Positions 25,246 through 63,690 of a DNA stretch of 64,000 bases are shown one piece after another (the stretch's first letter is position 1; every line of letters starts with the position of its first letter). The notes under the pieces were generated by a model that worked only from the letters and a program-made list of their open reading frames with translations, ran no database searches and had not been told where the DNA came from. The position numbers and the translations under genes are program-made. The stretch is taken from the NCBI RefSeq assembly GCF_902713615.1, contig NC_052154.1, positions 159,566,754 to 159,630,753 on the forward strand, read 5' to 3'. Source of the stretch: Scyliorhinus canicula. Its lineage: Eukaryota.

Positions 25246-25584
25246 GATCTTTAGAATTGGAGATATTCCCCTCACCACTGGAAATTTCAGCAAATGAAGA
25301 TGCACTTCTAATGTGCAAATATGATCAACCAGAGTCTGATCTCACAGACATAGCTGTTCGATGGGCATTTAGTTCGCAAACAAACCAGAGAGATATGTAT
25401 ATATTTGACGGAGGAAATCATGACCCAAAAAGAACTGGAGCAAAGATGTTTGATGATGATATACGGAAAGGAAATGCTTCACTTTACCTTCCAAATGTAC
25501 AGTTTAATGAAGCAGGAACATACACCTGCATTGTTTTTGTTACTCCCCATAAAGAAGAGATTAGTTCAATTATGCAAGTATCAG
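25246..25584 (+). CDS. Ig V-set exon of a B7/NCR3LG1(B7-H6)/tapasin-like gene
   Basis: AAAG|GA TCT TTA...TCA G|GTAAGA, 339 bp, phase 1-1; LLMCKY..AVRW..GNASLYLPNVQFNEAGTYTCIVFVTP with both Cys and Trp; family assignment from motif recognition only. Confidence 0.9.
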
Positions 25585-25965
25585 GTAAGAAAGATTATCA
25601 TTTTCTCTTGTACTATAAAATAATTGTCACACTCTTAGTATCAGGCATTTATTGCTAGGTGCAATAATATATGTTGGCAATCTATAAGAAATAATAATGT
25701 ATTCCAAAATGAAACTTCTAGTTCCCCTGGTGACTCTGAACTCACCAGTTAGTAACACAATCACAAAGACTGCTGTCCATGCATGGGGGGAAAGCAGTAG
25801 TCAGATTACAAAGAGCAAGTGAAACTTGCAAAGGAAATCAAACAGAATAAAAAACACAATTAAAGAAGTGCTCAGGAGGACTTTGACTCTTGAAAACATG
25901 TAATGGTGATATTGTAAATAAAAGTAAGGAAATGGGGGAAATTTTGAATAATTTATTTGCAAACA

Positions 25966-26310
25966 GAGGCGCTACGGTGACACAGTGGTTAGCACTCCTG
26001 ACTCACAGCTCCAGGATCCCAGGTTCAATTCCAGCCTCGGGTGACTGTCTGTGTGGAGTTTGCACTTTCCCCTGGTCTGCATGGGTCTCCTCCAGGTGCT
26101 CCGGTTTCCTCCCACTGTCCAAAGATGTGCAGGTTAGGTGGATTGGCCATGCTAAATTGCCCCTCAGTGTCCAAAAGATTAGGTGGTGTTACTGGGTTAC
26201 GGGGGCAAGGTGGAGGCGTGGTATTAAGTCGGGTTCTCTTTCCAAGGGCCGGTATGGACTCGATGGGCTGAATGGCCTCCTTCTGCACTTTAAATTCTAT
26301 GATTCTATGA
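25966..26310 (+). mobile_element. tRNA-derived SINE with CR1-like tail, in the V-C1 intron
   Basis: GGCGCTACGGTGACACAGTGGTTAGC head; ..TTCTATGATTCTATG tail. Confidence 0.85.
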
Positions 26311-26509
26311 TTGACTCTTTGTAGTAGAGAAAGACAATAACGTGTCAGACTAGGAGACACAAAGAACTAATGAGCTGAATCAGTGTGGTAGCTTTTCCGA
26401 TACAACAGCCAGGGTGGAATGTTCAAGTTTCTCAGCAAAAATCAACAAAATCTAGTTTAATATGTGATAATGTATTAACAACTAACATGTCCTGTTCTCT
26501 TTTATACAG

Positions 26510-26824
26510 TCCAACCAAAAGTCAGCGTATCCGCACTCAAAGTTACAACTGCAAATGGTACAGGGCACTTCTTGGCATGCCATGTGAAGGAATTTTATCC
26601 TGAAAAGGTCAATATTAGTTGGTTGATATTAACAGATGGAAAACTGGAATATGCTTCAAAAAATCAATTCACCGAGGATCTAGTTAGGAACAGTGATGGA
26701 ACATTCAGCGTTTCCAGTAAAATAAGAATTGAACCAACACTGGATGATCGCACTAAGTATAGATGTGTGGTGAAACATAAAACCTTTCTTGGCAATTTTA
26801 CACTGGACGCTGACCGAGTGGAAG
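26510..26824 (+). CDS. Ig C1-set exon of the same gene
   Basis: ATACAG|TC CAA CCA...GAA G|GTAAGA, 315 bp, phase 1-1; LACHVKEFYPEKVNISW..NSDGTFSVSSKI..YRCVVKH. Confidence 0.9.
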
Positions 26825-27649
26825 GTAAGACCCGATTGAGAAGATGACAAGTTTTGCTTATAATATATTTATTTACAATAGTAAAGCTCCCATTACATTC
26901 GTAACATTCAAAGTGACAAATCATCTGCTTTTGCTGCAGGAATCTCAGGCCCCAGTTACACTGTTCCTGCGGGTGTTGTGAAATCAGCTGATTTGAAATT
27001 GGCTGAACCTGCCTCATCATATGTTCTTTCTTCTGTCTTGCACAATGTTCTTCTCCAACCTTGCAAGCAATGTGAATGGAATGGACATCCTTGATCTTCC
27101 CAACACAATAGAAGAGTACAATGAGATGTACTGCTCTTTTAATCCTTTCTAAGACTGAGGCTGATATTTTGTGTTTTATATTCAGAATACTTGAAATTAA
27201 TTTATGGGGAGAGCACTTAACTGTAGTGTTGAGATAGAGGATCAGCCATGATCATATTGAATGGTGGAGCAGTTTCGAAGGGCTGAATGACCTACTCCTG
27301 TTCTTAATTTCTATGTTTCGATGGAAGTTATAGAAATGACTGAAATCAGGATATAAACATTGGGTGCAATTTTCCTGGTGGATCAAGTGAGAAAAGCTGT
27401 GTGAAACTTGCCAGCTTCACAGCTGTCTTTTCTCCTGATTAAATGGCGCACTGTACAATATCAGAACCCTTCCTAGCTGGAGGGGCGGTGTCTAAACACA
27501 CCCGTAACACCGCCAATGTGAAAAAGGGCGTCCCAATCTCAAAGCTAAATTGAAATTGAAGCCTCCTCCCACTGAACATTGGGACCCTCCCCCATGGACG
27601 ACCATACATTTCGGTGAACAAGGGGAATGTGCCCCAACCACACAAGGCA

Positions 27650-27830
27650 GGGGCTGTTTAGCACACTGGGCTAAATCGCTGGCTTTGAAAGCAGACCAAG
27701 GCAGGCCAGCAGCATGGTTCGATTCCTGTAACAGCCTCCCCGAACAGGCGCCGGAATGTGGTGACTTGGGGCTTTTCACAGTAACTTCATTGAAGCCTAT
27801 TTGTGACAATAAGTGATTTTTCATTTCACA
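27650..27830 (+). mobile_element. SINE-like insertion in a MITE-like GC block
   Basis: GGGCTGTTTAGCACACTGGGCTAAATCGCTGG..GGTTCGATTCC head; tail shared with 44700-44790. Confidence 0.6.
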
Positions 27831-61390: not shown

Positions 61391-61724
61391 GATACATCAG
61401 GGGCAAAATTCTCCGACCCCCAGCAGGGTCAAAGAATCGCCTGGGGGTGCCAAAAATCCCGCCCCCGCCGTGGCAGAGATTCTCTGCCACCCGGGAAGTG
61501 GCGGGGGCATGAATCTCGCCTCACCGATCGGAGAGGCCCCTGCGGTGATTCTCCGGCCCGGATGGGCCAAAGTCCCGCCGCTGGGAGGCCTCTCCCGCCG
61601 CCGAGGTTTAAACCACCTCTGGAACGGCGGGATCAACGGCGCGAGTAGGTGCCCGGGGTCCTGGGGGGGTGGGGGGCGATCGAACCCCGGGGGGTGCCGC
61701 CACGCTGGCCTGGCCCGTGTGTTG

Positions 61725-62210
61725 ACATAAACAAATGACAATAAGGAATCAGGAATCACTCAGAGTCACGATTAACACACACAATCCCTCTCCACCAACC
61801 CTCCCAACCACCCCCTCCAAATAATGTTCGATGTTATCCAATTTTTGAAAGTGCATAATGAATAATGCCCATGAATTGTAGAACCCCACCATCCTTCCCC
61901 TCAGTTCAAACTTAACTTTCTCAAGAGTCAAGAATTCCAACAGGTCCCCCCCGCCATGCCAGTGCACAGGGTGGAGAGGTTGCTCTCCATCTCAGCATGA
62001 TCCACATTCGGGCGATCAGTGGGGCGAAAACTACAACATCTACCTCCGCGCCCGTTTACAACCCCGGCTGATCCGAAACCCCGAAAATGCCCTCCCAAGG
62101 GCCTGGGTCCAGTTTCACGTGCACCACTTTAAAGATTACCCTAAAAACTTCCTTTTTGTAATCCTCCAGCTTTGGACTGGACCAAAACATATGAACGTGA
62201 TTTGCGCTCC

Positions 62211-62241
<31 letters not shown>

Positions 62242-63240
62242 ACACACACACAACGCTCACACACATTTTCTACACCCTCAAAGAACCGGCACATCCTTGT
62301 CCTTGTGAGGAGAGCTCTATATACCACCTTCAGCTGTACCAGCCCCAACCTCACGCATGAGGTGGAGGCATTCACTCTCCGGAGCACCTCACGCCAGAAC
62401 GCTTCCTCCATACCCTCTCCCAACTCTTCCTCCCACTTTGCTTTGATCCTTTTCATTGGTGCTTTCACCTCTTCCAAAGTATTTCCGTAAACCACCGACA
62501 CTACCCCCTTCTCCAGTCCCCCTGTCGTCTACACCTCCTCCAGCAATGTGGAGGCCGGCTCCACCGGGAAGCTCCGTATCTTCTTTCTGGCAAAATCTCG
62601 AACCTGCATGTGTCGAAACATTTTCCCTGCTCCAGTCCATACTTCACTTCCAGCTCCTTCAATCCTGCAAACTGACCCCTAACAAACAAATCTTTAGTGT
62701 CTTAATCCCCTTCTCCTCACATTTCCGAAAATTTCCATCCCACTTCCCTGGCTGTGGTTCCCCCGAATTGGCATTTCCCTTGACCCTGCCCCCAACCCGA
62801 AGTGTTGGCGAAACTGCCTCCAATTTCTCAATGAAGCTATTATTACCGGATTACCTGAGTATTTCACCGGGGCCATCGGGAGCGGCGCTGTACAAACTCT
62901 CCTCCATTCTGACCCACTGGGATCAACCCTTCTGACCCAGCTCCGCACCTCTCCACATTCGCCGCCCAGTAATGATACATCAGGTTTGGAAGACCCAAAC
63001 CCCCTGCCTGCCTACCCCTCTGTAGCAGCACCTTTCTAACTCTGGCCACCTTCCGTCCCCATTTGAACGAGGCAATCGTTCCTTCAATCTCGCTGAAAAA
63101 TGCCTTTGGCAGGAAAATCGGCAGGCATTGGAAAATAAACAGAAATCGTGACAACACGTTCATTTTAACCGCCTGTACCCAACCTCCCTGTGACAGAGGG
63201 AGACCATCCCACCTTGCCAGATCAGCTTTGATCTTACTTA
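61725..63240 (-). mobile_element. L1 ORF2 3' fragment, copy 2 (tandem duplicate of ~60190-61390)
   Basis: Near-identical peptides; separated from copy 1 by a truncated MITE at 61400-61715. Confidence 0.85.
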
Positions 63241-63612
63241 TGATGGTAAAGCGGCCCCTCCTGCTATTCACCGGCCTTGTTTCGCTCGAGAAAGAGCGCG
63301 ACAAGGTCAGAGAATTGCACCCGAATTGCATCAAAGCGAACTGCTAGCAACTAACTAGTTACTCTAATACTGATGTTATGCACATGGTTTTCACAAGAAC
63401 TGGACATTTATTTCTGCTATATGAGACTACATTAGACAGTGCAGGAGTTCGGAAAAATGTCTTATGAAGTGTTTTCAGAAATTCCTAGTTGAAGTAACTT
63501 GAAGAAGGATTAGAACGATGGAGTTATAATAATGTCACATTCAGGATTCAGATATTATTGATTCAGATCAGTTTCTTTGCTGGCTAATATGTATTGATTA
63601 TTACTATTTAAG

Positions 63613-63690
63613 AACAAGAACAACCAAAGGGAAGTGAAGATGATACTGGAAGTGCAGATATGGAGGAGGCGAATGCTCCCATTTCAAGAG
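63613..63690 (+). CDS. 78-bp phase 1-1 exon, copy B2
   Basis: TTTAAG|AA CAA GAA...TCA AGA G|GTGAAT; (E)QEQPKGSEDDTGSADMEEANAPISR. Confidence 0.6.

Follow-up and report, generated by a model that had tools for sequence, protein, structure and literature searches.

Exons for immunoglobulin-like domains behind the transmembrane exon of a B7/NCR3LG1-like locus of the small-spotted catshark, with a candidate cytosolic array

Exon organization of the locus

A 64,000-nucleotide stretch of the genome of the small-spotted catshark, Scyliorhinus canicula (contig NC_052154.1, positions 159,566,754 to 159,630,753 of the forward strand; hereafter the window), was analysed to follow up an earlier note, which had proposed a B7/NCR3LG1-like receptor gene whose transmembrane (TM) exon is followed by exons for immunoglobulin (Ig)-like domains. 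The window consists of transposon-rich vertebrate DNA with a single assembly gap of 100 N (20619-20718), and it likely holds one member of a tandem B7/NCR3LG1-like gene family. The explanation that we consider fairly probable is a receptor with V and C1 domains outside the cell, one TM and modules of spacers and Ig-like domains on the cytosolic side. The V, C1, TM, 78-bp and C1-like exons from which the earlier note had built its proposal were all confirmed:

25246-25584, forward strand: IgV exon of the B7 type (339 nt; phase 1-1; Pfam V-set, 1.6e-10)
26510-26824, forward strand: IgC1 exon (315 nt; canonical Cys-Trp-Cys; Pfam C1-set, 7e-13; AG/GT borders)
33384-33476, forward strand: TM exon with the AAG acceptor (93 nt, encoding VPQGAIIGAICGFVLVCAACFGLYFWIKKRK); 33378-33476 with the CAG acceptor
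38184-38261, forward strand: type-1 spacer exon (PSKQEESKDDSGKALLADLHSRLAR; 78 bp; AG/GT borders; phase 1 is the sole open frame)
41805-41882, forward strand: duplicate of the type-1 spacer exon (78 bp; 1 nt different from the 38184 copy)
44019-44200, forward strand: truncated Ig-like exon copy (only the initial ~60 codons kept, then divergence, with a stop at 44314)
46314-46736, forward strand: intact Ig-like exon (423 nt, encoding a 141-amino acid domain, X141)
57950-58027, forward strand: type-2 spacer exon (QEKPKESEGDTGSAVFEKANAPIAR; 78 bp; AG/GT borders)
63613-63690, forward strand: second type-2 spacer exon (78 bp; AG/GT borders)

Each exon of the chain lies between an AG acceptor and a GT donor, has a length that is a multiple of three and is of phase 1-1, and their joining in phase 1 gives 494 stop-free codons, open at both ends; the chain also stays open when the TM exon is omitted. 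No additional V or C1 exon was detected by tBLASTn between 33.5 and 64 kb, in agreement with the earlier note, which had seen no new V exon between 33476 and 63690; the search did not go through the region exon by exon for a second TM. The arrangement is that of the B7 family, with a B7-type V-set domain, followed by a C-type Ig domain and a TM, one domain per exon and phase-1 introns. The closest solved chains to the V exon are CD276/B7-H3 (3e-11), NCR3LG1/B7-H6 (1.6e-10) and VTCN1 (B7-H4), and the C1 exon matches Ig heavy-chain constant domains in a PDB sequence search. An orthology to NCR3LG1/B7-H6 is suggested only by automatic NCBI names, and the V exon scores nearly equally against CD276 and B7-H6, with CD276 slightly the better. 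Pfam SPRY was matched neither by the window exons nor by eight proteins of the family, the part of the gene past 64 kb being unseen.

The 141-amino acid exon as an Ig-like domain

Searches with the window's own 141-amino acid exon against Pfam, PDB sequences and the ESM Atlas returned nothing usable, while a HMMER scan of representatives identified 37 X141 homologs. The AlphaFold structure of X141, predicted from an alignment of 36 domain copies, is a beta-sandwich (predicted local distance difference test (pLDDT): 92.9; predicted template-modelling score (pTM): 0.86), for which Foldseek returned Ig domains only, namely beta-2-microglobulin, CADM domain 2, sodium-channel beta-4 and VHH/V domains, with template-modelling scores of 0.45-0.6. 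Furthermore, 12 of the 36 X141 copies individually match Pfam C1-set (best: 3e-8), while the window copy gives no such match. The predicted fold, the Foldseek matches and the C1-set origin seen through these copies bear out the Ig-like character proposed for the 46314 exon, and on the predicted structure X141 is a divergent C1-set-derived Ig domain. The canonical C1-set residues are absent from the window copy, where the B-strand Cys is replaced by Trp, the C-strand Trp by Ser and the F-strand Cys by Ile; the shark copies carry Trp, Thr or Ser, and Ile, respectively, at these positions. X141 also carries an insert of ~40 residues, and its two conserved non-canonical Cys residues show no strict co-variation.

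The same layout in other cartilaginous fish

Gene models with the layout V-C1-TM-(spacer-X141)n in a single open reading frame (ORF) are found in Heterodontus, S. torazame, Stegostoma, rays and Callorhinchus. The Heterodontus protein XP_067902348 consists of a signal peptide, V, C1, TM and seven repeats of a 26-amino acid spacer and X141, followed by three spacers. The model of the S. torazame ortholog reads V-C1-TM-sp1-sp2-X141-sp2-X141-sp2-sp2-X141 and shares 91% and 85% identity with the V and C1 domains of the window, respectively, while similar models occur in Stegostoma, Mobula, Hemitrygon, Rhinoraja and Heptranchias. The shark X141-amplified proteins P0001, P0004 and P0008, from three orders, all share the conserved C-terminal motif ...NPSQ, the exon for which lies past the window.

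The layout is most compact in Callorhinchus. The gene for XP_042197527 (V-C1-TM-X141x3) spans 5.7 kb, and its C1 domain, TM helix and basic stop-transfer sequence are encoded in one uninterrupted exon, which a 260-bp intron separates from the first of three X141 exons. The gene that follows downstream has the same build, with C1 and TM in one exon and X141 thereafter. As C1 and TM share an exon and X141 lies 260 bp on, mis-joining of separate genes is not plausible in Callorhinchus. These single-ORF models, the compact Callorhinchus genes among them, support the V-C1-TM-(spacer-Ig-like)n layout that the earlier note had put forward. The AlphaFold model of residues 1-430 of the Callorhinchus protein shows V, C1, a 28-residue helix (247-274) and a confidently predicted Ig domain. 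In the Callorhinchus locus on MU249848.1 (800-5100 and 18742-25650 of the locus sequence) the genes form a head-to-tail cluster on one strand, in the order of X141 exons of an upstream gene, the 5.7-kb gene and another V-C1+TM-X141 gene.

A wider family with post-TM C1-like arrays

In gene models of ~30 species a domain of the X141 type begins 8-40 residues after the sole TM, so that the post-TM place proposed for the 141-amino acid domain is also seen in its relatives. In proteins of a long type, the X141-type domain (D1) is followed by five to seven further C1-like domains, which are almost linker-free and the last of which forms the end of the protein. The long type is found in chimaera, sharks, rays, bichirs, sturgeon, coelacanth, lungfish, caecilians, salamanders, frogs, a turtle and squamates. 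Its members are mostly annotated as 'uncharacterized', with the NCBI label NCR3LG1 given to those of Ambystoma, Rhinophrynus and Rhineura. In the long gene of Callorhinchus each domain has an exon of its own, all within 13.7 kb, and the X141-amplified genes are on the same scaffold at a distance of ~100 kb; one protein of the long gene (UniProt V9K7L7) is presumably transcript-derived.

In sequence searches the post-TM domains hit constant regions of Ig heavy chains at 2e-20. Among 13 orthologs, conservation of D2 (44%), D3 (40%) and D4 (40%) is comparable to that of V (42%) and C1 (42%) and, because they are conserved as well as the ectodomain, the post-TM domains are under selection. As part of the reading favoured above, X141 is likely an amplified copy of D1, the membrane-proximal domain of a C1-like post-TM array of 6-8 domains in an old gene conserved from chimaeras to reptiles.

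Topology of the Ig-like array

The encoded receptor would start with a signal peptide, followed by an ectodomain of IgV and IgC1 and a single-pass TM helix ending in basic residues. Behind the TM, phase-1 exons would supply acidic, Ser-rich spacers of 26 amino acids and the 141-amino acid Ig-like domains, and in the membrane isoform these modules would form a string of folded beta-sandwich domains that face the cytosol, with C1-set-derived domains lacking the disulfide pair. In the homologs, one TM follows the signal peptide and K/R residues lie directly C-terminal to it; a conserved basic motif of the stop-transfer kind links TM and D1, and the domain begins immediately after it. The Cys-Trp-Cys is kept in 30/30 ectodomain C1 domains, while both Cys residues are kept in 46 of the 141 post-TM domains. 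The loss is position-specific across lineages: D1 has neither Cys, D4 and D5 lack the F-strand Cys and D6 that of the B strand. Single Cys residues that have no partner are nevertheless conserved in the post-TM domains. In seven proteins of the short type, N-glycosylation sequons number 30 in the ectodomain (13.1 expected) and 22 in the post-TM part (22.6 expected). Topology rules and these sequence signatures place the post-TM Ig domains probably in the cytosol, and the membrane isoform, with its Ig domains on that side, is probably the main form.

Two groups of observations weigh against this reading, the first of which concerns the side of the membrane. D2 and D3 of the long type retain Cys-Trp-Cys in every lineage. 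The sequons of the long type are little enriched on either side, a test that does not discriminate, and conservation of individual sequons among the long-type orthologs likewise gave no discrimination between the topologies. Furthermore, there are predicted isoforms of Heterodontus (P0040), Hemitrygon (P0068) and Rana (P0029 vs P0065) that lack exactly the TM exon, which is of phase 1-1, and P0018 and P0035 are likewise without a TM. With the TM exon skipped, the whole chain would be secreted and the Ig array would lie outside the cell. The TM exon could then be a cassette, the functional long product a secreted V-C1-(Ig)n of the non-rearranging Ig-like kind and the TM-containing transcripts minor or early-ending. 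The TM-less open chain of the window exons and the likeness of the post-TM domains to Ig heavy-chain constant regions are also in line with an extracellular array. This alternative is nevertheless unlikely: the disulfide is gone from most post-TM domains, post-TM sequons are at chance level, the basic stop-transfer linker with D1 directly behind it is conserved, and the shared C1+TM exon of the two Callorhinchus genes means that their TM is not skippable as a cassette.

NCBI annotation and state of the S. canicula copy

The second group of observations concerns the S. canicula copy itself, and whether its V-C1(-TM) and its spacer/Ig-like exons make up one functional gene or instead two transcription units, or a decaying copy. 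NCBI splits the locus between two models. P0076 ('natural cytotoxicity triggering receptor 3 ligand 1-like', 379 amino acids) covers V-C1; it contains the V exon at 100% identity, also matches the C1 exon and runs on past C1 into the intron (...EGKTRLRR*). Its N-terminus is drawn from 2401-2613, 20410-20613 and 22439-22492 and has no signal peptide; this 5' end is probably mis-built. Between the end of the piece at 20410-20613 and the N gap there are 5 nt, and a copy of this piece with 54% identity is found at 47195-47398 on the reverse strand. The second model, P0002 ('DDB_G0287625-like'), begins at a Met inside the 46314 exon, its N-terminus being identical to X141, skips the 57950 and 63613 spacers and joins X141 straight to another X141 exon past the window end, over a gene range of 64 kb from the X141 exon. 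The current annotation thus splits the locus, and the gene continues beyond the window end.

Further points on the same side are found in the exons. The TM exon has tandem acceptors, CAG at 33375-33377 and AAG 6 nt downstream. CAG, the stronger acceptor, gives G|AA TAA, with an in-frame stop (33380-33382) ahead of the TM, at a position that aligns with a Pro codon in the S. torazame ortholog (P0077); because use of CAG yields this stop, the membrane form of the S. canicula copy would depend on the weaker AAG acceptor. A leader exon upstream of V was not found in the window, either by scanning or by tBLASTn with the S. torazame leader, the gap at 20619-20718 being unread. In S. torazame, isoforms have common downstream exons under two different V-C1-TM heads, and some chaining by the annotator may therefore have occurred. 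Decay would also fit the duplicated spacers and the truncated X141 copy at 44019, which is a pseudo-exon or an alternative terminal exon; the truncated copy shows 71% identity over 59 amino acids by tBLASTn and differs from the intact copy in 17 nonsynonymous and 2 synonymous codons. The two type-2 spacer copies (57950 vs 63613) have diverged faster than their flanks (11/78 vs 10/220 nt), and of the codon changes 7 are nonsynonymous and 2 synonymous. Such a pattern suggests relaxed or diversifying selection on the spacers.

Separate units or a decaying copy nevertheless seem quite improbable to us. Splice sites and the open phase-1 frame are intact in every exon, P0002 does not begin at a natural start but at a Met halfway through an Ig domain, tBLASTn found neither a V nor a C1 exon on the way from the TM exon to X141, nor is there a leader, and the model of the S. 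torazame ortholog continues through the TM into X141 modules. The claim of the earlier note that one transcript encodes V, C1, TM and cytosolic Ig folds is thus upheld in its layout by the models of the homologs; the cytosolic side is a reading of topology, and in S. canicula two NCBI models and the stop behind CAG stand against the claim. We infer a full-length transcript of the S. canicula copy from sequence, while this copy may be partly decayed or mainly yield a soluble V-C1 product. Under the single-locus reading, the present S. canicula annotation, with its two unrelated-looking models, would be corrected.

Repeats and transposons

Two further spacer copies, outside the exon chain, were identified:

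~14981-15058, reverse strand: inverted orphan copy of the type-2 spacer with the intron that precedes X141
59766-59807: partial spacer copy

The type-1 spacers sit in a 3,621-bp tandem unit present in two copies (35352-42594; 99.4% identity), which arose by duplication only very recently or else is an artefact of the assembly, and the type-2 spacers sit in a duplicated pair (57608-58215 and 63273-63878; 88.9% identity). The intron sequence upstream of X141 (45335-45669) recurs at 14575-14908 with 81-83% identity. Hence, of the intron recurrence described previously, the part that links ~45340-45480 to the inverted region near 14900 was recovered, while that involving ~43500-43620 was not reproduced at E<1e-3. 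Because the inverted spacer at ~15 kb adjoins the intron sequence that precedes X141, spacer exon, intron and Ig-like exon were once a repeat unit, and the unit defined in the earlier note is backed by this copy.

The region 14901-19105 is a collinear inverted copy of parts of 52689-63762 (87-98% identity), and the two flank the V-C1-TM and X141 exons; much of this duplication is reverse-transcriptase sequence of the long interspersed nuclear element type. A gypsy-type long terminal repeat retroelement on the reverse strand (10200-14200), with reverse transcriptase (PF00078), RNase H (PF17917) and integrase-like and gag-like ORFs, occupies the expected site of the Ig-like exon of the inverted unit and cuts the unit off. 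A G-rich minisatellite at 49854-50574 (periods of 63, 84 or 188 bp; 83-85% matches) gives long ORFs rich in Pro and Ser when read on the minus strand, which are not genes.

Proposed role and comparison with known systems

By analogy with the butyrophilin B30.2 domain or the FN3 array of integrin beta-4, the cytosolic array could serve as a scaffold or sensor. We tentatively suggest, as a possibility that is less secure than the layout itself, that in jawed vertebrates the ancestral B7 gene of the NKp30-ligand type was a two-sided Ig receptor, with V-C1 outside and 6-8 C1-set domains inside that control the display of the ectodomain through pairing or cytosolic partners, and that D1 was amplified in cartilaginous fish and the array lost in mammals. 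Such a receptor, if real, would be the Ig-based equivalent of B30.2 signalling by butyrophilins. To our knowledge, C1-set domains are known only from lumenal or extracellular positions, in Ig, T cell receptor, MHC, beta-2-microglobulin, tapasin and some B7 or SIRP molecules, and these would then be the first C1-set domains of the adaptive-immunity type at work in the cytosol. The earlier note had not recognised this layout for the B7 family, and the literature searched likewise gave no account of B7 or NCR3LG1 proteins with Ig domains after the TM, while papers on B7H6 evolution may hold an earlier mention. A layout in which a B7-H6-like ligand carries, behind its TM, a C1-set array that is conserved from chimaeras to reptiles would be new among receptors, and it raises the questions of which partners the cytosolic Ig domains bind, whether TM skipping acts as a switch between membrane and secreted forms, and what mammalian B7-H6 has lost.

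The catshark locus shares with NCR3LG1/B7-H6, the mammalian NKp30 ligand, an ectodomain of B7-type IgV and IgC1, a single TM and phase-1 exons. The cytoplasmic tail of the mammalian protein is non-Ig, whereas that of the catshark type would be made of Ig-like domains. Butyrophilins (BTN/BTNL; V-C-TM-B30.2) also combine a B7-like ectodomain, one TM and short juxtamembrane exons with a cytosolic beta-sandwich domain, a position that is probable for the array described here, and they provide a precedent for inside-out signalling through a cytosolic sensor domain. Unlike in butyrophilins, the post-TM domain of the catshark type is a C1-set-derived Ig domain in up to 7-8 repeats, and not PRY/SPRY. 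Integrin beta-4 is a type I receptor with a cytosolic FN3 array that acts as a scaffold; it resembles the layout proposed here in carrying Ig-like beta-sandwich domains, arranged in an array, on the (here probable) cytosolic side, but its sequence is unrelated and its domains are FN3 rather than C1-set, so that the likeness is one of analogy only. Non-rearranging V-(C1)n molecules (UrIg2) and Ig heavy chains (IgW, IgNAR) have one V and many C1-set domains, each encoded in one phase-1 exon and amplified by exon duplication (PMC12227049). In these molecules the TM follows the last C domain, whereas in the catshark-type family it follows the second of about ten domains.

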